A DNA stretch of 64,000 bases from Oikopleura dioica. Its lineage: Eukaryota > Animalia > Chordata. Position numbers and translations under genes: made by a program. The notes beneath the pieces are model-generated. The model was given only the letters and a program-made list of their open reading frames with translations. It did no database searches and had not been told where the DNA came from. How positions within the stretch are numbered: the stretch's first letter is position 1; every line of letters starts with the position of its first letter. The stretch covers positions 16,689,208 to 16,753,207 of the forward strand of contig OU015568.1 in NCBI GenBank assembly GCA_907165135.1. The letters run 5' to 3'. Positions 11,716-64,000 of this stretch are shown here, one piece after another.

Positions 11716-14314
11716 ATGAAACTTTCGTCGGGATTTTTAATTTCTCAGGCAGCGGCTCTGACTGTCGGTAAGAAAATAGAGAAAATAAAAAAGAGGTTTA
11801 AATCTTTTGAGAATGTGACATTTCGCATTTGCTCTCGAATTCGACTCTTCGTCTCCGTCCGTATAACAGGCTTGACCTCCTTACCAACAGAGGCAAGATC
11901 CGAAAACGAGCTCAAACTTTCGTCCACGAGTCTGGCCCCTTCTCTGACTATTTCGTAAAATGCTCCGCCTACCGAAAACAAGTCGGAACCATCAAATGCT
12001 ACAGCGACGGGAGCTTGGTCGAAGACCCAGGGTGTCTAATTTGGACGGACAAAATTGGATTGGATAGTTGGATTGGCCTATTTTGGAAAATAGCCGGAAA
12101 TTGGTTGGATCTGGCCCCGGTTTTTGTTGGATATTTCGGATTATTGGGCATTATTGGATAGTTGGAATAAATTGGAAATCGGGGCTAAAATGGGCAAATT
12201 GGCGGCCAAAATAAATTGGAATACTGGTAAATTGTTGGGCAACCAGCCGAATCAGCCGTTTTAATCAAATTTTAACCAAAAAATACTCCTAAATTTAACC
12301 GAATAATGACTACAATCAGTTGGATAAATGCACTTTTGGGTCCAAAGAGCAATTTTTAAAGTCCTTTTTTTAGTTTCTTAGAGAAGAAATAAGATAATAT
12401 AAATCGAAAATATTTTTGGGAAGTAAACTTTGTCGGATTTTTATCGGATCCAGCTTTTTTATTGGAATCGGAAAATAATTGGAAAACTGGCTAAATTGGG
12501 GAACTTCAAAATTGGCAAATTATTGGATTATTGGGCTAAATTGGAATTGGATTGGATTTTGGCCGGATCAAACCCGAAAAAAAATTATTGGCCGGAAAAT
12601 GGGCGGCCAGACCCGAAAATTTTGTCCAATTTAGACACCCTGGAAGACCTTCCAGATTGTGTTGAAAGAGGATGTGACCCTTCTGATTTGGGAATTTGGA
12701 ATACAAAGACGTACACTGAAGCTGATGGGTGTAAAAGAGGATATACGGAGAACGGACTAGAAGTGGAAAATAATGGATGCTTCAGAGAATGCAATCAGGT
12801 GTGCTTCAAAATTCCAGCAGAAACTAGATAAACTGCCATTTTTCAGCCCGACGGAACAAAGCTCACCTCGAACAAAAAGATCAAATGCGTCTGCAACGGA
12901 AACAGCTGCAACTATGTTTTTAATGTCCGAAGGGAACAAACAAGGAAATTGTTTTTCAAACATGCAAATTCTTTTTTTGCGAAAAGATCAATCAAAAAGA
13001 TGGTCGAATTATGAAGGACACGTGCTTTTTTATGTAAAAAAAAAAACAAAAATATAGCATCGACGAAACCAAGCCAAACGGCCTCCCTTACATCACTCCC
13101 TGTGATACAGAGACAACGACTTCTCCAGCGACAACTTCTTCTCCTTCTTCCACCAACATCAATATTTTGGTGATTCCTATGTATAATAGCGAATCCTTTA
13201 TCGTCTCCGGCGATGGATCAAGAACTACATCCGCGACTTTGACTGGCAGTTCAACTGAAAGAGCGCATTCCGTTATCATCCGCGACGAGCTCTACAGCTT
13301 CAAATATAAGAATGTAATTTTTAATTTTGGGGATTTTGAACCCATATTTTTTTCTTAGATCTCCAAGCTTAATGGTTGCAATTGGCAACTGATTCCACCG
13401 ACAGCAAACTATTTTCACGCCTTCAACAGCGCTGTTCTTGCTATTGAAGATGGAAAAAAAGGTAAATTATATCATATATATATATAATTTATATGTTTCT
13501 GAAATCTTAATTTCCTGGCCAAATTTTGCCCCTCTTAAATTCTAAAAACACATATTTTTTGTCTTTTTTAGGCTTGATTTGTTTTCCCTACTACAATTAT
13601 GTGACCGCAAGTTACGAGGGCCCCCAGTTGCACAGAGCTTGTGAGATCTTCGACCCCGAAAGCAGTTTGAGTCAACTCCAACTGACGGCTTCGACCGAGT
13701 TTAAACACAACAGCGCTGGGCTAGCTTTTTACAATGGAAAGCCGACAGTTGTCGGTAGCAGCACAGCCCATGGCGCTCAAAAGGTGGAATTCTTCACTGG
13801 GGACGAGTGGGTTTCTATGCCGGATCATCCAACGTAAGAAACAATTTTATTATTTTTCTTTGATAAACTTTTCTTCAAGTCCCGTGTACGGCTACTCTCT
13901 GACGGGCCTTGATAGCGGGGCAATGCTTGTATTTGGCGGGTGCACTCGAAAACCTGTCACTTCGACTTCTTGTTTCTTGTCAAATACGATTTGGAGACTC
14001 AAGGACGATCAATGGACGGATATTGGACAATTATCATCAACTGTGAGCTACTATCTTCAAAATTTTTTTGTTTTATTTCTTCGTAGATTTATGGATACGG
14101 TTCTGCCATCAATATCGGCAATTTCGTTTATCTCGTCGACGAACAAGACGGAACACAAGAAAATACATATACAACACGGAGACTTTCGCTGGAAAACGAT
14201 CTGATCATAAATGAGGAGATTATTGACACTAGAACTATTTCCATGCGACCTGGAAACTATGCGATCGCCACAAGGCCTCACATTATGCTGACTAGCTTTG
14301 ATTTCTGTGTTTGA
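11716..14314 (+). CDS. Secreted Cys-rich (sushi-like) modules plus a C-terminal kelch-like beta-propeller of a lineage-expanded family
   Basis: Signal MKLSSGFLISQAAALT, Cys-rich exons and a Thr/Ser linker. Propeller motifs LICFP..ACEIFDP, FYNGKPTVVG, MPDHP, MLVFGG, IWRLKDDQW and terminal DFCV*. The frame across the 12930-13060 homopolymers is unresolved. Confidence 0.6.
12040..12630. repeat. Degenerate AAATTGG/TATTGG/GGCC-rich intronic repeat
   Basis: Many imperfect copies of ttgga/aaattgg and ggcc units inside a long intron. Confidence 0.55.
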
Positions 14315-14480
14315 AATAAAGAAAAGTCAATTTGAAATTTATCAAAATTTCGATAATCAATATGATATTAACAGAATATCTCCAAGAAATGTCAAGGGTG
14401 ACGTCATATTTATTTAAAATATGAGGAAAGGAACTTTAAACAGTTGGACGGAGATTTTTAAAAGTCGTTAAAAGAGCGAA

Positions 14481-17400
14481 TCAAAACCCAGTAAATGAGG
14501 TCGTAGTTGTCGTCGTCGAAGTTGTTGTCGAGACTGTTGCGGTTGAGTGTGATGCAAGTTCTTTGTAAAAGAAGTTTCTGACTCCAACGTCACTGATGAA
14601 ACTGCCCGCTGGATTATTTGAGAAGCCAAGTTGATAATTTCCTGGGAAGTTTTGAGAAGCATATGTGGCAGACACAACTGGAAGGCCGTTGATTGACCAC
14701 ATGCTTGTCCAAAGTCCGGCTTCGTCGTCGAAGATGTGCTCGAAGACAAAGGTGCTCCAGCTATCGCCAGGGCATTGATCGACCCAACTAAGGACGACTT
14801 CGTGGTCGAGATCGCCATCCCAGTTGTTTTGAACGATTGGACTGGAGAAGAGTAGATTGAAGTTTTCGTGGTTCGTGACCATTGCATCATCATCAACCGC
14901 ACTGAAAAATATTCAATTTCATCAAGTTAAAACAAACTTACAATGCAAGCCAAAGGAAGCCGGGCAATCGGCTCATTGCTAGGAATGGCTTATCTGCAGC
15001 CGTAACTCGAGGAGCTTCTTCTGGATTCGTCAGTTCTTCTTCTGAGGCGAGAATTTCTGCATTCTGCTCGCGAATGTCCAAAATGTGGCCAGCACCGAAG
15101 ACCGAATTGCCGCAATCAATCTCGAACTGAATCTTGAACGACTTTTCCAAGTCAACATCCATTAGGACATTTTCACCGCTGGCGGATTCTGGCGTTTCGC
15201 CGACAAATGAAATCATGGAAGTGTCTCTGACGTAAAAATTTCGAATCTGCCCTGGTGGCGCGGCGAAGACAGCAGGAGAGGCAAGTGACGCAGTCATTGT
15301 TCCTTCGTACATATCATCACTTGCGGCGAACATCCTCGTTTGCAAAAGTTCGCCGTTGAGGAAAGTTTCTTTCGTTATCATGTTAAAATTTTCATCGTAG
15401 CTTTGAGTGAGTCGAATGCTATTGAAACCAGGAACACAAGCGTTGTGAATGAGCTCGTTGAAAGTTGCTCCACTTTGGTTTTCACTAAGAATACAATTAA
15501 GAGAGCGGTCATTTTTATCGTATATTTTATAAGAATTTTAAAAACTTACTGGCCGATCCACGCCCTTCCACCGCTGCTACGAGAATGGAAGAACCATAAA
15601 TTGCCCTCTTCCCACCAGTTTCGTGCTTGTCTTCTTGCGAACTTCGTGTCAGGATTGGTCATAACATCCCTAGCCATTGATACACGAGTGAAGTCCCCAT
15701 CCCAAATGTGAGGACCAATGTGCTCTCCAGCTGCGGTTGGGTACTCGCAAGTGAACTCATAACCGAGCTCGTAGTTCTTTGTGACTTCGAATGTTCCGAG
15801 AATTCCCTCTGTGCCACCGACATAGTCGCGAGGTGTCGCGCAGACAAAATTGGTGCAAGTATCAAAACCATCACATGGGCAGGACAATGCTTCGCATGTC
15901 AATCCTTCACTTCCACAAGTGCATCTCTCTGTTTCAGTGAAAATTTCACCGTTGAGTTCGACGTAATCATCGTCTTCAGTAAGACAGCCACACGATGATT
16001 CAGGAACACAGACGCCGCCCTCAAGAACTTTTCCCTCTGGACAACCGCACATTCCCTCGACAAAATTGAGGGTTGAAAATTCACATCGATTCTCCTTGCT
16101 TACGCCTCGGACAACATCTTCGCATGTTTGAAGCTCATGGCACATGTTTCCACAGCCTTTATAGACCTGGCCAGCGGGACACTCTTCTTCACAGCCTGTA
16201 GCCGCAGCCCAATTGCAAATTCTATCGTAATCAGCAGATAGTGGATCTTTGCCTTCGAGACAACTTGACGCATAATCTCGCATGATACCGCAATGGAGAT
16301 CATCTTGAATGCAGCTGTTGAAAAGGCAAGCTTCGTAAGTTGGTGTTCTATCTCCAAGGAATTCACAGCCTGCGAATATGTTGCGATTTGTATAAACATT
16401 AGGCGATTGGCGAACAGGGTCACATCGATCAGCTGCTTCGTTGTATTCTGCTGTAGATAAATCTTCACATGGTGCTATTCTGTCACCATGTGAGCATGTT
16501 GTGTCATCATCAGTCTTGAATTGTTCTCCAAAAGCGTCACTGTCGAGAGCGTACTGCCTTATAAACTCTCTTTCTTCAGAAAAATTGTCATTAAAATTGC
16601 CGCAGAGACCAGTTACTTTATTCTGGTAGCAACTTGAAACACCAACTTTTGCTTTCCAGTAATATGCTTCGAATCTGACATATAAATTTTCATGAACCCT
16701 TATATATACATTTTTAATATCATCGCTGCCTCGCCATTTTGATAAATAAATGTAATAATCATCAGTATTAAGACGTTGAGTCCGATCAGGCATCTTTGAG
16801 TAAGCATCAAATATCCTTTCTCCAGTCAGATTATCAATGAACGTGATTTCTAATTTGGTGTTCCTATAATTTGCTGAATCGTCTATATTGCGAATGTGAA
16901 CAGAATATCTCTTCTCATCTCCAAACACATAATTGGCTGCATGAAAATCGAACCACAGCTCATCAGTGACAGCCCCAACAAAAGGCAGCCATGGACGACG
17001 ATTTTTCGTATCAACATTGAAGCCAGGAAAGTCGATTGTATCTTCAGCACTTGCAAGATTATATCGACAATCACCATGAAAGCCGAGTTGATAATAACCG
17101 TCGAAAGGTTTAATATACGGATCATTATGGGCCTTGCAAAACGCCCATTTTCTTTCCTCGCAAGGAAGTGGTCTACAAGTGACTCCAGTCGACGTACACT
17201 CGCAGATTTCATCGTCATGTCTGAACTCGCCTTGTTCGTAATAGCAGTGGAGATAGAAGCAGCCGCATTCACTTTCTTCAATGCAGCGTCCATTGTCGAA
17301 GATGTATCCCGGCTGGCAAACACACATGCTATCGATCTCGTCAACTGAGTCTCCACATCGTTGCTCATCTGTCAAATGTCGATTCGCACATGTTCTCCTC

Positions 17401-20400
17401 GCCGAGCAGACATTAGCACATCCATCAAATACCATGTTTTCGCCACACTCTTCCTCACAGCCAAGCTCATTCGCCCAAGAGCAGACTTGTGGTCGTAGAT
17501 TTGTCGCAATATTGTTCAAGCACTCTGTCGCGTATGCTTTTAGAGTAGAGCAGAGAGCCGTTCTATCTTCGCAGGTGTCAACCAGACAGGCGAGATGGAA
17601 GTCATCTTTGTCAACAGTGCACTGGTTGAAAGGCCCGCCAAGAATATTCTTATCGAGCGCAACACACATGTCAGTGACTTCATCGATGTCATCGCACTCA
17701 AAATCGTGAACTTCTCGGCATCGAGGATCAGGCTCGGCAAAGTCGTTCGCCCATTCAACGAGCTCAGTTTGATGAGCTCTCCAGTTTCCAAGACCTTGAG
17801 CTCGGCTAAACTCGTCATATGCAATACCGTTCCAGTTTCCGCAAAGGCCGAAAACGTGATTCATGTAGTAGTCTGGTAGATCAACTCTTAGATGAGCGAA
17901 GAAGAAATAGTTGAGATCAGCGCCGAACCATGTTTTTACTCTGAAATGATTTCCGTTGATTTCCATAAGAACATCATCATTTTCGAATGTCAGATCGTAA
18001 TTTCCTGCTTGACGATCGTCCAAAACTATATTTCTTCCCATAAGAGTCACAATGTATCGCGGAACTTCTTCCGGACCTTGAGTTTGACCTGGGAATTCGA
18101 ATGTCCAGCCGTTAATGCAAGACACTGCGTTCGCAACATTGCCACATTGTCTTTGGTCTACATCAATTTTGAAAGCGGGCATATTGAAAAACTCAGAATC
18201 TCCTTCTGACTCGACGAATGTGTACTTGCAAGCTCCTTGGAAATGATGTCTTCCGCCATCAAAAGTTGTGTAATGAGGATCTCCCTGTCCTGTGCATCGA
18301 CGAGAACCAGTTGAAACGGCGTATTTGGGGCAATCTTCTTCTTCAATACATTCGCCGTTATGCAAAACTTTGCCGTCCGCGCAGCCGCACATTGCAGTAA
18401 TGATGTCGTCATTCTGACAGCGATCAGAGTCTGAAACACCATTTGCGATGTCTTCGCATGTTTTTTGCTCTCTGCACTCAGTAGTACAGCCCTTGTAGAC
18501 CTGACCGACGGGACACTCCTCCTCGCAGCCTGTTGCTGCTGCCCAATTGCAAATTCTTTCGTAGTCAGCAGAGAGTGGACTTTTACCTTCGAGACATCTA
18601 GAAGCGTAGTCACCAATGATACCACAGTGAAGATCGTCTTGAATACAGCTGTTGAACAGGCAAGCTTCGTAAGTTGGAGTTCGATCTCCGAGGAACTCAC
18701 AACCGGCGAAAATGTTGCGATTAGCTGAGTTCTGAGGCGATTGCCGAACGGCGTCGCAACGGTCAGCTGCTGCATCGTAATCAGCGGCTGATAGATCTTC
18801 GCAAGGAGCGAGTCTATCGCCGTGAGAGCACGTGTTGTCATCATCAGTTTGGAATTGATCGCCAAATGCATCACTATCAAGAGCGTACTGTGTTATGTAG
18901 TCTCTTTCTTCTGAATTATCGCCATTGAAATTGCCACAGAGACCCGTCACTTGATTTTGGTAACAATTAGAAACGCCCACATACGCCGACCAAGAATAGT
19001 ATGAGAATCTTATATAGACACTGCCGTGAGCTCGTAGATAGACTGAGTTCACAGCACCAGTCAACCATGATCTTGTTACAGATAAATAGAAATCGTCCGT
19101 TGACACATACATATTTCGTGTGATTTGCGAGACAGCATCATACAATTTTACTCCAGTAAGATTGTCTGTCAGGGTAAATTCGAATCTGACATCTCTCCAT
19201 GAAGATGAATCATCAAGATTTCGAATGTGGAGGGAGTATCTTTTTTCGTCTCCGAGTGTGTAATCAGCTGCGTGGAAATCAAACCAGAGCTCATCGGTAA
19301 CAGCGCCAGCGAATGGAAGCCATGGCCGACGATTTTTCGTATCCACATTGAAGCCAGGATAGTCGACTGTGTCTTCTGCACTCGCTAAGTTATATCGGCA
19401 ATCACCATGGAAGCTGAGTTGATTCCAACCATCGAAAGGTTTAATATACGGATCATTATGGGCTCTGCAATATCCCCATGATTTTTCCTCACAAGGAAGT
19501 GGTCTACAAGTGACTCCAGTCGACGTACACTCGCAGATTTCATCGTCATGTCTGAACTCGCCTTGTTCGTAATAGCAGTGGAGATAGAAGCAGCCGCATT
19601 CACTTTCTTCAATGCAGCGTCCATTGTCGAAGATGTATCCCGGCTGGCAAACACACATGCTATCGATCTCGTCAACTGAGTCTCCACATCGTTGCTCATC
19701 TGTCAAATGTCGATTCGCACATGTTCTCCTCGCCGAGCAGACATTAGCACATCCATCAAATACCATGTTTTCGCCACACTCTTCCTCACAGCCAAGCTCA
19801 TTCGCCCAAGAGCAGACTTGTGGTCGTAGATTTGTCGCAATATTGTTCAAGCACTCTGTCGCGTATGCTTTTAGAGTAGAGCAGAGAGCCGTTCTATCTT
19901 CGCAGGTGTCAACCAGACAGGCGAGATGGAAGTCATCTTTGTCAACAGTGCACTGGTTGAAAGGCCCGCCAAGAATATTCTTATCGAGCGCAACACACAT
20001 GTCAGTGACTTCATCGATGTCATCGCACTCAAAATCGTGAACTTCTCGGCATCGAGGATCAGGCTCGGCAAAGTCGTTCGCCCATTCAACGAGCTCAGTT
20101 TGATGAGCTCTCCAGTTTCCAAGACCTTGAGCTCGGCTAAACTCGTCATATGCAATACCGTTCCAGTTTCCGCAAAGGCCGAAAACGTGATTCATGTAGT
20201 AGTCTGGTAGATCAACTCTTAGATGAGCGAAGAAGAAATAGTTGAGATCAGCGCCGAACCATGTTTTTACTCTGAAATGATTTCCGTTGATTTCCATAAG
20301 AACATCATCATTTTCGAATGTCAGATCGTAATTTCCTGCTTGACGATCGTCCAAAACTATATTTCTTCCCATAAGAGTCACAATGTATCGCGGAACTTCT

Positions 20401-23400
20401 TCCGGACCTTGAGTTTGACCTGGGAATTCGAATGTCCAGCCGTTAATGCAAGACACTGCGTTCGCAACATTGCCACATTGTCTTTGGTCTACATCAATTT
20501 TGAAAGCGGGCATATTGAAAAACTCAGAATCTCCTTCTGACTCGACGAATGTGTACTTGCAAGCTCCTTGGAAATGATGTCTTCCGCCATCAAAAGTTGT
20601 GTAATGAGGATCTCCCTGTCCTGTGCATCGACGAGAACCAGTTGAAACGGCGTATTTGGGGCAATCTTCTTCTTCAATACATTCGCCGTTATGCAAAACT
20701 TTGCCGTCCGCGCAGCCGCACATTGCAGTAATGATGTCGTCATTCTGACAGCGATCAGAGTCTGAAACACCATTTGCGATGTCTTCGCATGTTTTTGCTC
20801 TCTGCACTCAGTAGTACAGCCCTTGTAGACCTGACCGACGGGACACTCCTCCTCGCAGCCTGTTGCTGCTGCCCAATTGCAAATTCTTTCGTAGTCAGCA
20901 GAGAGTGGACTTTTACCTTCGAGACATCTAGAAGCGTAGTCACCAATGATACCACAGTGAAGATCGTCTTGAATACAGCTGTTGAACAGGCAAGCTTCGT
21001 AAGTTGGAGTTCGATCTCCGAGGAACTCACAACCGGCGAAAATGTTGCGATTAGCTGAGTTCTGAGGCGATTGCCGAACGGCGTCGCAACGGTCAGCTGC
21101 TGCATCGTAATCAGCGGCTGATAGATCTTCGCAAGGAGCGAGTCTATCGCCGTGAGAGCACGTGTTGTCATCATCAGTTTGGAATTGATCGCCAAATGCA
21201 TCACTATCAAGAGCGTACTGTGTTATGTAGTCTCTTTCTTCTGAATTATCGCCATTGAAATTGCCACAGAGACCCGTCACTTGATTTTGGTAACAATTAG
21301 AAACGCCCACATACGCCGACCAAGAATAGTATGAGAATCTTATATAGACACTGCCGTGAGCTCGTAGATAGACTGAGTTCACAGCACCAGTCAACCATGA
21401 TCTTGTTACAGATAAATAGAAATCGTCCGTTGACACATACATATTTCGTGTGATTTGCGAGACAGCATCATACAATTTTACTCCAGTAAGATTGTCTGTC
21501 AGGGTAAATTCGAATCTGACATCTCTCCATGAAGATGAATCATCAAGATTTCGAATGTGGAGGGAGTATCTTTTTTCGTCTCCGAGTGTGTAATCAGCTG
21601 CGTGGAAATCAAACCAGAGCTCATCGGTAACAGCGCCAGCGAATGGAAGCCATGGCCGACGATTTTTCGTATCCACATTGAAGCCAGGATAGTCGACTGT
21701 GTCTTCTGCACTCGCTAAGTTATATCGGCAATCACCATGGAAGCTGAGTTGATTCCAACCATCGAAAGGTTTAATATACGGATCATTATGGGCTCTGCAA
21801 TATCCCCATGATTTTTCCTCACAAGGAAGTGGTCTACAAGTGACTCCAGTCGACGTACACTCGCAGATTTCATCGTCATGTCTGAACTCGCCTTGTTCGT
21901 AATAGCAGTGGAGATAGAAGCAGCCGCATTCACTTTCTTCAATGCAGCGTCCATTGTCGAAGATGTATCCCGGCTGGCAAACACACATGCTATCGATCTC
22001 GTCAACTGAGTCTCCACATCGTTGCTCATCTGTCAAATGTCGATTCGCACATGTTCTCCTCGCCGAGCAGACATTAGCACATCCATCAAATACCATGTTT
22101 TCGCCACACTCTTCCTCACAGCCAAGCTCATTCGCCCAAGAGCAGACTTGTGGTCGTAGATTTGTCGCAATATTGTTCAAGCACTCTGTCGCGTATGCTT
22201 TTAGAGTAGAGCAGAGAGCCGTTCTATCTTCGCAGGTGTCAACCAGACAGGCGAGATGGAAGTCATCTTTGTCAACAGTGCACTGGTTGAAAGGCCCGCC
22301 AAGAATATTCTTATCGAGCGCAACACACATGTCAGTGACTTCATCGATGTCATCGCACTCAAAATCGTGAACTTCTCGGCATCGAGGATCAGGCTCGGCA
22401 AAGTCGTTCGCCCATTCAACGAGCTCAGTTTGATGAGCTCTCCAGTTTCCAAGACCTTGAGCTCGGCTAAACTCGTCATATGCAATACCGTTCCAGTTTC
22501 CGCAAAGGCCGAAAACGTGATTCATGTAGTAGTCTGGAAGATCGACTCGGAGGTCGGCGAAGTGGAAATAGTTGAGATCGGCGCCGAACCAAGTTTTGAC
22601 TCTGAAATGATTTCCGTTTATTTCCATAAGAACGTCATCGTTTTCAAAAGTCAAATCATAGCTTCCTGCTTGACGATCGTCCAGGACAATCCTTGATCCC
22701 ATAAGCGTGACAATGTATCTTGGAACTTCATCCGCAGGTTGCTTTCTCCCTGGGAATTCGAATGTCCAGCCGTTGATGCAAGTGACTGCGTTAGCAACAT
22801 CGCCGCATTGTCTTTGGTCAACATCAATTTTGAAAGCTGGCATATTTCTAAAGTTTGAATTTCCGCCTGACTCGACAAAGGTGTATTTGCAGGCTCCCTG
22901 GAAATGATGCTGTCCTCCATCGAATGTTGTATAATGGGGATCTCCCCATGCTCGACATCTAGCTGTGCTCGTAGATACAGCATCTCGAGGGCATTCATCT
23001 TCGTCAATACACTTTTCATTATGCCATATTTTTCCCCAACCACAACCACACATTGGTTGAATTCTTGGTTCATCCTTGCATCTTTCCATAATGTCGATAC
23101 CATCGGCGATATCGTCACATGTTCTCGCTTCATGGCACGCACTTGTGCAGCCCTTATAGATTTGAGTTTCTGGACATTCTTTTTCGCATCCTGTTGTCTT
23201 TGGCCATTTGCAAACTTCCCAATAGCCAGTTGTATGAATATTTTTTGTTTTTAAGCATTCTTGAGCATAATTTCTGAGGGTACCGCAGCCAATGTCTGGT
23301 CTTATACAGCTATTAAATAGACAAGTATCATAATATGGCTGTTTATCAATATGACAAGATCCGAAGGCCTTTCCAAATTGATCCTCGTTCTCATCAAGAA

Positions 23401-40687: not shown

Positions 40688-42267
40688 ATGACGCTTTCGT
40701 TAGGCAACAACAAGTACAATCGCCAGAATTGGGAAGACTCCGACTTCCCGATTCTCTGCCCGACATGTCTCGGAGACAATCCCTACATCCGAATGATGAA
40801 GGATAAATACGGAAAAGAATGTTCCATCTGTGAACGACCCTTTACCACTTTCAGGTGGTGCCCGGGTAGGGGAATGAGATACAAGAAAACGGAAATTTGC
40901 CAGACTTGCGCAAAGGTATTATAATGGACAGGCGGTATTCGTATTTGAATGTACGTGCATTTCTTATTTCTATTCGTTTTTATGGTCATCTTGAGCGTTT
41001 TCTTAGATGAAAAATGTCTGCCAGACATGCGTCTTCGATCTCGAGTACGGGCTGCCTGTGGCTGTGAGAGATCATGCGCTGGGACTGAAGGATGATATAC
41101 CGGTGAGTTTCGAGGCAAATTTTCGCGCTGAAAATTAATTTAGACGGGTGATTTCAACAAAGAGCATTTCCACCAAAATCTTGGAAAAGAACTGGCGCTA
41201 CAAGGAGACGATTTGAGAGAGGCGCATTCAGCGCCGAATGCGTTTTTGGAGAGAATTTCGGCTGGGCGGAAAGGGCCGTATTACAAACGAAACTTGCCGC
41301 ATATTTGTTCTTTCTGGGTCAAGGTCAGATCTTAGATCTCTTCTCCATCCGAATTTCTTTCTAGGGCGAGTGTAGAAGAGGAGAAGAGTGTCCGTACCGG
41401 CACGAGAAGCCATCAGATCCAGATGATCCGCTCTCTGTTCAAAATATTGTCGATAGATTTTACGGTACGAAGGATCCCGTCGCCGACAAGCTCCTTCGAC
41501 GAGCTGAAGAAATGCCTTCCATGGCGCCTCCAGAGGACAAGGTAACACTCTTCTTCTGATCAAATCCCTTCTCAATTTTCAATAGACGATTACGACTCTC
41601 TGGTGCGGTGGCGTGACTTCTGCACTGACAGAAACAGATCTTCAAGAGTATTTCTACCAATTCGGCGAGGTTGCTTGCATCAACATCGTCCAGAAAAACT
41701 CATGCGCCTTTGTCCAATTTACGAAACGAGAATCGGCCGAGCACGCGGCAAACAAGTGTTATGGAAGACTCGATCTCAAGGTAAATCATTTTTCCTAGCG
41801 TTTTTTTATGTTTTAAAAGGGAGTTCGCTTGAATGTTCGATGGGGCAAGCCGCAGCAATCAGGAGCGAAGCATCACGCCGATGTGGAGAAAACGACTCCC
41901 GTTCCAGGTCTTCCCGGGCCTCTACCGAACCCAGGAAAAGTCACTCAATACGATCCGTCCAAGAGAGCGAAACTGGCTGAAAGCGTGCCAAAACCAATGT
42001 CTGAACCTATTGATCTGCCAACAATGGGGGCAATGGGAGCCCCTAGAGCGCCATCTGAGTTTGCTGGACCTGACAAAGGAGGAAATTCTGGCTTCCAGAA
42101 GGTATGAAGAAATCATATTTTTGCTGTTTCCAATATTTTCTTTCAGATTCATTATCCATCGCAATCGAAAGACAGAATGGGCTCTGGAAAGTATTCGCAC
42201 ATGGCTCCCCCTTCTCAGTACAACAACGCAAATCAGGTATTCCTTGATTGTCCATAAAATTCGCTAG
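40688..42267 (+). CDS. RBM22: Pre-mRNA splicing factor RBM22 (Cwc2/Slt11-like; zinc finger plus RRM)
   Basis: [96 protein letters not shown]. The final exon boundary is uncertain. Confidence 0.95.
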
Positions 42268-49668: not shown

Positions 49669-49981
49669 ATTATGTTTAACCTCTGCCCGCATAGAAAATT
49701 TGATTTTTCAGGACTACAAATCAAAGTTTTCGGAAATCTTATATGCTTTAATTGATGAGCAAAGGCAAAGATCCACTGTCCGCTGATAACGAGAGAATTT
49801 GCAATTGGGCTGAAGCGACAGGCTGTGAAGAAGAGGGTCCCGCTGGCCAGGTCTATGAAGACGGAATTTGATGAATTTTCAATTGATTTTTCTTTATTTC
49901 AATTTGTTATTATCAAACACAAGTGGCCTTCTCACATAAGCATAATCTCCAGAATAGGCAGGTCGCATGGAAATAGCTCTA

Positions 49982-50133
49982 CATCAGGGATCCCTGTAAT
50001 GCGCCGGAAAATACAGCGCTCTGATTCGTCGAGCGTACAGCGCCCATCTTTCCCTTTTGCCTCTGAAGCGGCCAAAAGAAAGCGCACTGATGGGGCGGCG
50101 GATGAGTCAGTGCACTACAGGGATCCCTGATGG
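49982..50133. mobile_element. Tc1/mariner-type MITE with TA duplication, inserted in the propeller-gene relic
   Basis: TA|CATCAGGGATCCCTGTA ... TACAGGGATCCCTGATGG|TA. The uninterrupted paralog at ~14225-14240 (gacacTAgaactatttcc) shows the empty site. Confidence 0.88.
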
Positions 50134-50739
50134 TAGTATCAATTATCTTCTCGTCCGTAATCAGATCGTTTTCCAGCGATAGTCTTCGTGTTGAGTGAGT
50201 ATTTTCCTCTCTTCCGTCTTCTTCGTCGATCAGAAAAAAGAAATGAGCTTGCTATTCAAATCTTTATTAGACGATCACGACTCTTTCGTGCGGTGGCGTG
50301 ACTTCCGCCTTGACGGAAACAGATCTTCAAGAGTTTCCACCCTTAATATTGTCGAGGGAATGTGCGGCTGTCCAGAGGGAGAAGTTCTTGAAGCCGGCGT
50401 CTGTGTTCCTGAAACATCATGTGGATGTCTAACTGAAGACGATGATTACGTCGAACTTAATGGAGAAATTTTTACTGAAGCAGAGAGGTGTACTTGTGGA
50501 AGCGAAGGACTGACATGCGAAGCTTTGTCCTGCCCATGTGATGGTTTTGATACTTGTACGGATTTCTTGAGACTCGGTCCTCAAAGTTCCGGCTTCTCAA
50601 AAAGACATATCAATTAAAAGTTATCATCGATATTTTCCGGCAAAAAGTCAAAAATTTTGATATTTTTAAATTTTAAACTGAAAACCTGGCTTATTTTATC
50701 AAACAATGACGTTGGTTCAGGCTTTTTTGAAACAAATTC

Positions 50740-50996
50740 GAACTTAAATCGTGCTTTTTTACGGATTTTTTTGGATTCTGCCCGGATTTTACAGACATAG
50801 ACAAAAGTCTGGGGTTGTCCGGATTTCAAGGACAAATACGGACAAATACGGATTTTGTCCGGATCGTGACAAAAGTCCGGTCTAGCCTGTCCGTTTTTTC
50901 CTCGACCAAAAGACTAAAAGTCTAGTCTGTCCGCACGGACAAGACCGGACAGACACGGATAAAATCCGTACACGGACATGTCCGTTTAGAACCCTG
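50740..50996. repeat. CGGACA/TGTCCG-rich repeat, MITE-like, ending ...TTTAGAACCCTG
   Basis: More than 10 copies of cggaca/tgtccg/acggat. Its right end abuts the propeller fragment at 50997; the left end is undefined. Confidence 0.6.
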
Positions 50997-51919
50997 ATCA
51001 CAGGGAGTGATGTATGGGAGGCCGTTGGGCCTGGTTTCGTCGATGCTTTATTTTTTGTTTTTTTTTTTTACATAAAAAGCACGTGTCCTTCAAAATTCGA
51101 GTGTTTCGAGTCAAAGCTCAAAAAACCCATCTTTCTGATAGATCTTTTTACGAAAAAAGAATTTGAAACTTTGAAAAACAATTTCCTTCTTTGTTCCCCT
51201 CGTAAATTGAAAACGTAGTTGCAGTAGAATGAACTTTAAACAGTTGGATGGAGATTTTTTGCTTCGTCAGGTGCTGAAGGAGCAGGCAGAAGAAGACGTT
51301 GACTAAACTTTCCAGTTGTCAGTCAAATAATCTCCGTATAAACGTCGAGTCTCATAAACCAGCACTTTTTCGTTTTTTTTTTCTTCGATAGCTTTTTCTC
51401 TCTAAGAGATCACTAACTATGGTTACTGAAAAAGAAACAGAGACAAGTGCGAATCAGATTGAGCAACCTAAAATTCAGGTGAAGAATGCAGGTAAAGGCA
51501 AATATAAATAACGCAGAGATTGAAAGTGTCTGGACTGTCACTGCATTGGCATTCTCAAGCAGAAGGATGACAAGGTCTATTTGTGTCCCGAAGAAGTATT
51601 GTCGACGAGGAGCATAAACACGCGGAAACAAGACTTGAAGGAACGGTTATTGACTTTAATTAACAGTATTGCTACTAATTTACAGTTGTAGCACAACCTT
51701 TTTAACCCACAGCAAAAATGTTGACAAAGTGATATTAATAAGTTATAAATAATAACCACGTTGATTCAGAAGAAACTGACAAGGAAAAGAGTCCGTCAGA
51801 GGTCAACCCTGGCAAAACATGGATTTTCGACAAATGATCAAAAGATATCCTACCTCAGCATTGGCTCGATATTCTGGCTAACCATCATCCTCATAAGTAC
51901 CTTTTGATAGATTTTCTTA

Positions 51920-53355
51920 GTCGAAACAATTTTCAGCGAATTGGTACTCGCTTCAAAGGTCACGAGGTGTAACGACTTTTCTGACTTCTGAATGCCATCG
52001 AAACTACAAAGAATGCGTCAAAATCGCAACAATGGACTACTGCGGGCATTTGATGAAGCAATGTTTTGAAACTAAAGAGTTCATCCTTCCAGAATCAGTT
52101 TCTAAAATTGAGCAAACGAAAGTCCCTCCGCACGTATTCTCCCAAGACGAAAACAAAGTCAATCTCCGCCGCTGTCAGAAGAAACAATTTTACGACCTGA
52201 AAATTTGCCGCCATCTTTGTTCGAATTCAATTGTTTTGGAATCAAGGAGGACTAACTCGATGTCGCCCTGTGAGTCCATTTGCTTTGAACTGACACGATC
52301 TTCCGATTCTGCTGGAGAAGTTTGCCCGTTTCAGAAATACTGTAGAAATGGATGTCCTTGTCGTTATTACCAATGCGAGAAGCTGAAGTCTCGGCAGATA
52401 TTGGTTCCTGTTTTTGACTTAAAGACGTACACAACATATGATGGTGAAGCTAATGGTGACGCTGAATTTATTACAGGTCGTTGGACGCCTCGAATTAATA
52501 AAAAGCGGTATCAAATAAATTTATCGAACTTGAATGGAAATGATAAACAATTGAATGTCTCCGATTCTTTATACCCCTATGCACGTGTTTACTGATTGAT
52601 TTTTAAGTAAATATTTTGCCCCTTTTTGTGGGTGCCCTTTATTGGGTTGTATGATTCCAAATCAATAAAAACGGGAAAGTCAACCGGTGCCACTTTCCTC
52701 AATGGCGAGCACTACTTGGTTGATGCCATTGGAAATCTGGCGAAAGTCAGAGAAAACGGCGATGCTCCGATATTTATTGCAAATCGACATAGGAATATGT
52801 GGGTAAGCCTCTTGCTAGTCGTATTTTAGTTTGAGTTTCAGAGGGTTTTTTGTTTTTCACTTTGGATCATCGATCGGTACTCATCAAATCGAGATTCGTC
52901 GTCGAGACAAAGGAAGAAAGTATTTTCCTGTCGTTGTCATCTGAAAGAGATCAAATAAAATTATATTTAAAATTTGACAAATTTTGATCATGAGAAGTTC
53001 TCCGACCGGAAGAGTCAATAAATGCTTCTATTATGCTCCGGATTACAACCTGAATCGCTTCGAAGAAGCACAGGGCTACATCGCCAACAATCACTTCAAC
53101 GCGAAAGTGTCGTCAGTGAGCTTCAGAGAAGTGTTTTACTTGATGAGTGTCCGGCTAGGTGACCATTATATCCAGTTGTCGACGACTGTAGCGTTGAACA
53201 GAATCAGAATAAGCGAAGAATTGGAGAAAGGTTGGAAGAAATCCGAAATCGGAATGCCAGCAGAGTTGCGAGACTTGGATCCAGTACATGTGATTCCCTT
53301 GAAACGAGTTTCACCTATTTTTGGACTAAACCAGTTTATCGGAGTGCATTTTTGA
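51920..53355 (+). CDS. Cys-rich module (C..C...C...CP.QKYCRNGCPCRYYQC) plus a divergent propeller-like region; 5' end unresolved
   Basis: ORFs 52032-52595, 52626-52829 and 52984-53355 are co-oriented with intron-sized gaps. GATFLNGEHYLV and KCFYY motifs resemble the propeller family. Confidence 0.5.
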
Positions 53356-56449: not shown

Positions 56450-57551
56450 AACTTCAAAAAGAACCCTCAACAAGAAAGAAAAATTCGCTCGAAAATTGAC
56501 ATATCGAACATTGCAAAAACTGTCAACAAAAAAGTGCGGATATTCAAGAATGACGGCAGCGCTATAATCATGAATTTTGTTTACACTGTCGGATGTGAAA
56601 CGAAAGCAATCCTGGTCCTGGGCATGCGCCTGAACCAAGCATTTTCGATTTCCTTGGACGGATCAACTAAGACGGCAGTAAGAATCGGAGCGCCGAGAAA
56701 CAGCAATTTTTACTCTTCCATTAATGCGCTTCTGAAAAACGACGTCTATATTTTCGGTGGATGGCCGGATGACAGAAAAGTAGAAATTCGATATTCTTCT
56801 TTTTAAAATCGAGTTCAGGTAGCACGATTGGAAGGCTGTGAGTGGATAGAGCAGTCGACTCGATTAATCCACAGGTTTTCGTGGATGTCGGCCGCAATTT
56901 CGATTGAAGACAAAGCGTTGATTTGCTTTGATTACGAATACAATAATAGATGTGAACTTTTCGATGGATTGTCTTCGACAAGAACATACACACCGAATTT
57001 CCAACATCGCGGTGGCAAACTCGGCCTCTACAACGGAAGACCGACAACAGTAGGAAGCTATTATGGGCTAGGTAGAAAGGCTGTCGAAAGACTCCATTTT
57101 TCAGGCTGGTCGTCTTTACCCGACTTCCCGATTCGGTATTTATTCAATTCTGGTTCATTCATTAAAAATTCATAGAGAAATAAGCTATCATGTTTTGGTG
57201 GGTCTACCGAGCGGCAGTCTTTTGCTAGCTGGAGGTTGCCAAAGTAATTATTTTGTGCAATCGGGGATTTGGCTCCTCCAAACCGATATGTGGAAGGAGA
57301 TCGGAGATCATAAAAATGTATGTTCAAGAAAAATTGAAAATAACAATTCGATTTGAACTTAGGCTGACCACAAAGCATTTGCAATTCTCATCGGAAATTC
57401 AATTTTCGTTGTCTCTGGCCTTGATACACCACATGCAATCGAACGTCTCGATTTCGAAGGAGATCATTTGGTCAATCAAGAAGTCATTGGAACATCTTTT
57501 TACAGTCCTATTCCTTTACTTATAGAAGTTTCTGCTGACTTCTGCGTCTAA
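56450..57551 (+). CDS. Kelch-like beta-propeller family protein; 5' end unresolved
   Basis: VYIFGGWPDDRK|VARLEGCEW, ALICFDYEYNNRCELFDG, LGLYNGRPTTVG, LPDFP, LVGLPSGSLLLAGG, IFVVSG, LIEVSADFCV*. Confidence 0.75.
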
Positions 57552-63381: not shown

Positions 63382-64000
63382 GTCAAGCCCAAATTTAATT
63401 AAAAGCCAGGGAAGGGGGGGGGAAACGGCCCTTCGGGCCGTCAAGCCCAAATTTAATTAAAAGCCAGGGAAGGGGGGGAAACGGCCCTTCGGGCCGTCAA
63501 GCCCAAATTTAATTAAAAGCCAGGAAGGGGAAACGGCCCTTCGGGCCGTCAAGCCCAAATTTAATTAAAAGCCAGGGAAGGGGAAACGGCCCTTCGGGCC
63601 GTCAAGCCCAAATTTAATTAAAAGCCAGGGAAGGGGGGGAAACGGCCCTTCGGGCCGTCAAGCCCAAATTTAATTAAAAGCCAGGGAAGGGGGGGAAACG
63701 GCCCTTCGGGTCGTCAAGCCCAAATTTAATTAAAAGCCAGGGAAGGGGGGGAAACGGCCCTTCGGGCCGTCAAGCCCAAATTTAATTAAAAGCCAGGGAA
63801 GGGGGGGAAACGGCCCTTCGGGCCGTCAAGCCCAAATTTAATTAAAAGCCAGGGAAGGGGGGGAAACGGCCCTTCGGGCCGTCAAGCCCAAATTTAATTA
63901 AAAGCCAGGGAAGGGGGGGAAACGGCCCTTCGGGCCGTCAAGCCCAAATTTAATTAAAAGCCAGGGAAGGGGAAACGGCCCTTCGGGCCGTCAAGCCCAA
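63382..64000. repeat. Tandem satellite, ~56-bp unit (52-58), 11 full copies plus a partial, running off the window
   Basis: Unit GTCAAGCCCAAATTTAATTAAAAGCCAGGGAAG(n)AAACGGCCCTTCGGGCC. Unit starts at 63382, 63440, 63496, 63548, 63601, 63657, 63713, 63769, 63825, 63881, 63937, 63990. Confidence 0.97.

Follow-up and report, generated by a model that had tools for sequence, protein, structure and literature searches.

Genomic setting and source genes

The DNA analysed here comes from the Oikopleura dioica assembly OKI2018_I69, which holds 64,281,565 bases (64.3 Mb) in 19 contigs. The window, that is, the whole stretch of 64,000 nucleotides under study, covers positions 16,689,208-16,753,207 of contig C1; coordinates given without a contig name are window positions. 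C1 is the PAR (17,092,476 bp), and the window lies 340-400 kb short of its long-arm end. The source animal was an Okinawan male, and the authors of the assembly assume that the X- and Y-specific regions (XSR and YSR) are attached at this end of the PAR (PMC8008620). The assembly was produced by merging a 99.3-Mb diploid Canu draft with HaploMerger2 and keeping the 'reference' half, the allelic half being taken out; heterozygosity is estimated at 3.6%. O. dioica has the quickest gene-order scrambling known and includes documented cryptic lineages; the authors of the scrambling study could not find precise molecular breakpoints (PMC11067885). According to Deng et al. 2018, as cited in that study, the species is without canonical NHEJ and uses MMEJ, which is put forward there as a driver of the genome scrambling (PMC11067885).

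Three genes in the first 42 kb of the window are relevant to what follows. An oikosin-30-like VWD/C8/TIL gene lies on the reverse strand; its terminal ORF (15546-20807) is intact, intron-free and 1753 aa long, and the gene reaches to about 28.5 kb. The terminal ORF has a Pfam VWD domain. Among named proteins the closest relative is the house protein oikosin 30c (45% identity), and the protein matches of the gene carry PF00094, PF08742 and PF01826, which places it among the oikosin / VWD-C8-TIL proteins. Within it, positions 16117-23214 consist of three tandem 2334-bp units (U1 to U3). U2 and U3 are nearly identical, and U1 is about 82% identical to both, a pattern that points to recent duplication of units, or to their concerted evolution, inside an ORF longer than 5 kb and free of introns.

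A forward-strand gene starts at 40688. Its exon 1 matches Pfam STL11_N at 7e-14, and its RRM exon (41586-41798) matches RRM_1 and aligns to residues 230-292 of human RBM22 (E=1e-18) ahead of every other RRM protein. The exons were searched singly rather than as one joined spliced model. With both STL11_N and RRM matches, the predicted gene is RBM22, a splicing factor of the Slt11/Cwc2 type, and it is the sole RBM22 gene of the assembly. The third gene, K1, is kelch-like. Kelch-like genes at 13123-14100 and 56534-57341 form one lineage-specific family, with 31-41% amino acid identity to each other and no Pfam match.

Anatomy of the shard chain

A patchwork of about 1.5 kb is found at 49762-51259. 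It consists of at least seven abutting pieces, referred to here as shards, and every best match is a local source. This was established with BLASTN, by comparing the window with itself and positions 49700-51300 with the whole 64.3-Mb assembly. All gene pieces have sources within 37 kb. Shards A and E derive from the oikosin-like gene and shard D from RBM22; BC, F and G come from non-coding sequence in the surroundings of K1. Shards D and G are in direct orientation relative to their sources, and A, BC, E and F are inverted. All shards are described below as read on the forward strand.

Shard A (49762-49860) contains codons of the oikosin-like VWD gene and is 91% identical to its source (16255-16157, reverse strand). 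A conserved TIL cysteine has been changed to glycine, and the reading frame runs into a stop right past the shard. Shard BC (49861-50255) is non-coding and matches 14346-14121 (reverse strand), the stretch between K1 and the oikosin gene, whose 3' ends converge there. It is split by TE1 (49982-50133), a MITE of about 152 bp which is missing from the source. With TE1 removed, BC differs from its source by p=0.214 across 210 aligned bases, with five gap events. TE1 has perfect 17-bp terminal inverted repeats, a GGATCC core and TA on each side (a TA duplication). Its genomic copies, for example C3:148445-148602, are 85-97% identical. One copy lies about 320 bp from an oikosin paralog tail on C4 (13,303,270); this is probably a coincidence.

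Shard D (50256-50334) contains the end of an RBM22 intron and 21 codons of the RRM exon; its source is 41558-41649 (forward strand). BLASTN aligns 50259-50334 with 41574-41649 (forward strand) at 87% identity. In the 5' part of the shard about 15 nt align, with an 11-nt gap, to the final 28 nt of the 44-nt RBM22 intron. Because these intron bases are kept, DNA or pre-mRNA must have been copied; spliced mRNA is excluded as the template. Shard D does not have the makings of a working RBM22: it has 21 codons only, its RNP2 tryptophan (tyrosine in human) is replaced by serine, and no other RBM22 exons are found near it.

Shard E (50334-50565) contains 77 codons of the cysteine-rich C-terminal tail of the oikosin-like gene and is 89.7% identical to its source (16078-15847, reverse strand). 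All 12 cysteines are retained, and neither D nor E has indels or stops. The exon part of D together with E makes up the interval 50271-50562, from which the sequence-only reading of this DNA had started.

The next piece, TE2 (50563-50999), comprises the terminal 437 bp of a roughly 1.42-kb repeat, the 5' end of which is missing here; the piece has no template nearby in the assembly. The repeat itself is non-autonomous and has more than ten genomic copies at 88-95% identity. Shard F (50997-51224) is a copy of non-coding DNA directly upstream of a K1 exon (13106-12906, reverse strand). Its initial 103 nt or so are about 95% identical to the source and the remainder about 85%, with a 25-nt indel separating them; the overall divergence is p=0.10. 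The chain ends with shard G (51228-51259), a 32-nt copy of 14428-14459.

No further shards are found when 43-64 kb is compared with 1-43 kb by tblastx and short-word blastn. The left flank (47.3-49.76 kb) is unique in the genome. The right flank (51343-53323) belongs to a big dispersed family, for which a first look gave 470 candidates, 66-78% identical and spread over all large scaffolds. Within this flank is a cysteine-rich ORF of 187 aa (52032-52595), and the family may be either a gene family or a mobile element. The window closes with a tandem array (63382-64000) that repeats about every 56 bp and whose copies are 95-98% identical; it runs past the window end.

Two other kinds of object were considered for the patchwork. 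A Pack-type transposon is ruled out: the mosaic occurs once in the genome, no part of it but TE1 and TE2 is repeated, and the sources lie within 37 kb. False haplotypic duplication as an assembly artefact is unlikely, as the flanking DNA at 47.3-49.76 kb is unique and nothing else is duplicated.

Junctions

The shards are joined at microhomologies of 4-9 bp. The D|E junction is TTTCnACC, the junction between E and TE2 is a 9-mer common to the oikosin source and the TE2 copies, and the junction between TE2 and F is CTG(T)ATC. These three are direct junctions in short shared identity without target-site duplications, as expected of microhomology scars. At A|B, C|D and F|G there are 3-14 unassigned bases and the overlap is weaker. 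Simple duplication followed by deletion cannot yield the chain, since the order and orientation of the shards are mixed. The chain may instead be the scar of a microhomology-mediated repair or rearrangement which used multiple templates (MMBIR/MMEJ type). Judging from the junctions, the repair looks like end joining or replicative template switching.

Silent-site signal in the coding shards

The coding shards were compared with their sources in the parental reading frames, and dN/dS (omega) was estimated by GY94 pairwise maximum likelihood. Shard D has six synonymous differences and one non-synonymous difference from RBM22 in its 21 codons; the latter is the Trp to Ser change at the RNP2 aromatic position. 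These are the same codon pairs as in the sequence-only reading. That reading had also described the changes in the VWD fragment as mostly third-position ones, and the counts for E bear it out: 19 synonymous and 6 non-synonymous differences in 77 codons. Shard A (49764-49859) is different, with four synonymous and five non-synonymous differences in 32 codons. Pooled over the shards, the differences at codon positions 1, 2 and 3 number 10, 3 and 28. Omega is 0.073 for E, 0.055 for D, 0.07 (0.074) for the two together and 0.33 for A.

It should be noted that a dead copy, when compared with its living parent, is expected to show an omega of about (1+omega_parent)/2, that is, at least 0.5. The pseudogene null is thus about 0.5 rather than 1, because the parent still accumulates silent changes. 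The earlier argument that decay of local copies would not favour silent sites has to be restated against this value; restated, it holds. For E+D, likelihood ratio tests reject omega=1 (p=9.5e-11) and also omega=0.5 (p=2.7e-6), and a binomial test against omega=0.5 gives P = 1e-5. A dN/dS near 1 after codon-aware alignment, which would have spoken against the sequence-only reading, is therefore not what is seen. The omega of shard A differs from neither 0.5 nor 1. Only A looks like a pseudogene of a local parent, for which a dN/dS of at least 0.5 and replacements on the copy side are expected; E+D does not. The silent-site excess in D and E is well beyond chance.

The two shards also agree in the size of the signal. 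Divergence at 4-fold sites is equal in D (4/13) and E (10/32), at p 0.31 each, and their sources are 25 kb apart. Neutrality of the shards over the full length of their separation, as measured by 4-fold or BC divergence, would predict 32-44 replacement differences; 12 are seen. Hypermutable third positions are ruled out as a cause by the low GC3 (0.31-0.57) and by the mixture of types among the silent changes.

Non-coding shards are not in step with the silent sites. Their divergence is below the 4-fold level: 10% in F, 11% in B, 6% in G, and 6% in the UTR of a STIP1 piece which is described below. The difference between F and the 4-fold sites of D+E is significant (Fisher, p=7e-4, F lower), and the silent sites have about 3.5-fold the changes which F predicts. 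This low non-coding divergence could reflect either strong constraint in both lineages or shards of unequal age. Total divergence is about 10% in the coding shards as well as in several non-coding ones, a level that would suit plain neutral copies; this is contradicted by the codon-position pattern.

The most similar part of F (50997-51100, source 13004-13106) is about 103 nt long and includes a T-run as well as the sequence CACGTG. Its identity to the source is about 95%, compared with about 70% at silent coding sites. Neither source nor copy matches a family in Rfam, and a conserved RNA gene was dropped as an explanation for this part.

Polarity and timing of decay

Amino acid differences were polarised with the closest public O. 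dioica proteins, three in-genome paralogs and human RBM22 as outgroups. Across A, D and E, seven of the eight differences that could be polarised are derived on the shard side; they include the Cys to Gly change in A and the RNP2 Trp to Ser change in D. For shard A, units U2 and U3 provide an outgroup at the DNA level. Six of its nine differences can be polarised in this way, and five of these are shard-derived, four of them non-synonymous.

Since the replacement changes are mostly on the shard side, decay of the shards would be recent only. The neutral phase on the shard lineage amounts to about 0.02-0.05 per site, compared with a raw 4-fold difference of about 0.3. As read from these comparisons, the shards have been under purifying selection for most of their separate history and appear to have lost it only lately. 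Shard A behaves as a plain decaying pseudogene would, and simple copying of the local gene could account for it.

A second patchwork

Another patchwork of local pieces is found 43 kb downstream, at C1 ~16,782,700-16,784,250 (with pieces from ~16,782,650). It consists of inverted pieces of 62-377 bp which come from 20-27 kb upstream (sources at C1 ~16,755,900-16,762,200), are 90-91% identical to them and have local matches only. One piece contains the final 34 codons and the 3'UTR of a STIP1/Hop gene. The codons have six silent and two replacement changes, and the adjoining 3'UTR differs by 6%. The second patchwork thus shows a trend in the same silent-biased direction; the numbers are small.

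Identity of the template

No donor closer than the local genes was found in the 64.3-Mb assembly, in searches at the DNA level and with six-frame protein across all 19 scaffolds, including XSR, YSR and unplaced ones. The six-frame protein searches of the 19 scaffolds also gave no second RBM22. The next paralogs of the VWD/oikosin tail have merely 54-60% amino acid identity, and a metagenome scan returned no close relatives of the tail. Unlinked functional paralogs, which had been named as a possible refutation of a same-neighbourhood donor, are thus not found in this assembly. However, a missing second copy is uninformative about the other allele in a merged haploid assembly.

The template of the coding shards was very probably a diverged and functional version of the same neighbourhood, comprising the oikosin tail, the K1 flanks and RBM22. 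Purifying selection would have acted on this version until it was copied, by which time its silent sites would have reached a divergence of about 0.2-0.3 substitutions per site; neutral decay of the shards since then would have added only about 3-5%. The sequence-only reading had proposed a donor of this kind, and to that extent it stands; its description of the donor as 'lost or foreign' finds no support, since the donor may be another allele which the merged assembly does not show. Silent divergence is equal in D and E in spite of the 25 kb between their sources, so a donor at the level of a block fits better. With independent genealogies, two loci each with an excess of at least 0.2 would be improbable unless silent diversity were at least 0.15.

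Copying of the present local genes followed by neutral decay, with the silent bias due to chance or to mutational bias, is highly improbable. It fits shard A, the total divergence of about 10% in the coding and several non-coding shards, and even the replacement count if that is taken alone (neutral at about 0.05 per site). However, omega=0.5 is rejected for E+D (p=3e-6), the codon-position counts are 10/3/28, there is no hypermutable class (GC3 being low, at 0.31-0.57, and the silent changes mixed), and shard F predicts fewer silent changes by a factor of about 3.5. For D and E these comparisons refute neutral local copying, short of a third-position mutation rate at least 5-fold above that of non-coding DNA. 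A reading in which E, and perhaps D, serves as an exon of a functioning chimeric gene and so remains under selection is also very unlikely; candidates for such an exon are an ORF of 140 aa (50195-50617) and a 3' exon of the upstream gene at 47.7-49.7 kb. The ORF is open through E in frame, and the 12 cysteines, the freedom from indels and the omega of 0.07 would all be expected of a living exon. Nevertheless, it reads D out of frame, yet D is silent-biased in its old frame; it terminates within the transposon piece TE2 and has no Pfam match. E is half a TIL-type module severed from A, which has lost a cysteine and meets a stop, and among 5.8 billion proteins there is no protein of 77-245 aa with shared words. 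A comparably small chance is given to introgression, with either the orthologs of another cryptic O. dioica lineage acting as template or the mosaic as a whole passing from one species to another. Cryptic lineages are known (PMC11067885), and the donor was functional and diverged as this would require. The known lineages are too distant, though: the closest public (North Atlantic) O. dioica protein is about 65% identical, whereas shard E is 92% identical to the local tail and has no special states in common with that protein. The metagenome scan gave no close relative either, and a near-sister lineage is undocumented here. The introgressed cryptic-species segment suggested in the sequence-only reading accordingly lacks positive evidence.

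Two kinds of block-level donor remain to be weighed. One is an in-situ paralogous duplicate of the 12.9-41.6-kb block, including a second RBM22, which would have sat at about 50 kb, stayed functional for a long time and then been destroyed by microhomology-mediated deletions, with one or a few deletion or rearrangement events leaving about 1 kb of shards. Such a duplicate accounts for the omega of about 0.07, for D and E being equally diverged at silent sites, for the late onset of decay and for the location beside the sources; it needs no surviving second copy, and deletion by MMEJ is to be expected in O. dioica on the work of Deng et al. 2018 as cited in PMC11067885. In its fit to the data it is about on a par with its rival. 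Even so, it is rather unlikely. At least 29 kb must shrink to a tight chain of 1.5 kb with no remnants otherwise in 43-64 kb, the order and orientation of the shards (D and G direct, the others inverted) are not collinear with a simple copy, duplicate housekeeping genes must be retained for long, and the patchwork 43 kb away would require a duplicate block of its own. The other donor is allelic: a haplotype of this distal PAR segment, past or present, that has diverged deeply. This is preferred over the duplicate because of the tight chain, the trend in the second patchwork and the nearness to the sex-specific junction; taken by itself it is given a little less than an even chance. Against it stand a silent divergence of about 0.2-0.3, which is several-fold above the level suggested by 3.6% heterozygosity, the lower divergence of the non-coding shards, the fit of shard A to simple local copying, the lack of a nearby template for TE2 and the small change counts (seven in D and eight in STIP1).

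If the donor was allelic, as it may have been, the candidates are an old non-recombining arrangement and a partly sex-linked haplotype. The shards would have been made in cis on the diverged haplotype and come to lie beside the genes of the other haplotype later; either natural recombination or a HaploMerger2 path can place shards from one haplotype in cis with the genes of the other. A further step, for which the case is doubtful, would be that the last 400 kb or so of the Okinawan PAR has, or recently had, a second functional haplotype class with a silent divergence of about 0.3. This putative class might represent a recently formed sex-linked stratum, or else an old inversion masked by haplotype merging. 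If it existed, local shard patchworks would be datable footprints both of the second haplotype class and of microhomology-driven repair.

Significance and comparison with known systems

The kind of object is already known: it is a microhomology-joined scar of shards with pseudogene fragments. The locus offers a base-level view of junctions with microhomology in the fast-scrambling genome of O. dioica. Coding shards also serve as a clock, which sets the time that the template spent under selection apart from the short time since shredding. The interest of the locus lies in clues to haplotype structure near the PAR boundary and to the repair behind genome scrambling. If the template was a deep haplotype near the PAR boundary, the patchwork flags an unrecognised non-recombining segment of the sex chromosomes; if it was a destroyed duplicate, it shows the speed with which redundant blocks are erased in this genome. 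It is also a warning that, in haplotype-merged assemblies, a copy and its seeming parent may be different alleles.

Pack-type transposons are similar to the mosaic in that they are patchworks of gene pieces with transposon sequence. However, they are defined by terminal repeats and multiple copies, and the mosaic is single-copy and unframed by terminal repeats. Unprocessed pseudogenes from segmental duplication share with it the intron bases of D, the nearby parents and the decay of A. They differ in having an omega of at least 0.5, where D and E have 0.07; in addition, the fragments here are scrambled and no larger duplicate is left. Gametologs, evolutionary strata and old inversion haplotypes resemble the locus in block-wide, silent-biased divergence of a single age, here 340-400 kb from the PAR end. 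In those systems two haplotype classes are present, whereas here there is a merged haploid path with no match in XSR, YSR or the unplaced scaffolds.

With regard to the joining itself, the closest species-level parallel is MMEJ in O. dioica (Deng et al. 2018, via PMC11067885), where microhomologies at junctions are likewise found. The experimental products, as given in that source, are deletions with short microhomology; the chain described here has seven pieces, with inserts of 76-437 bp. Chains formed by FoSTeS/MMBIR and chromoanasynthesis are alike in their short segments (32-437 bp here), which come from tens of kb away in both orientations and are joined by microhomology. No breakpoint partner was identified for the shard chain in this comparison. 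FoSTeS/MMBIR insertions are identical to their templates at birth, but the coding shards here are silently diverged from the local genes, so that another functional template is needed.
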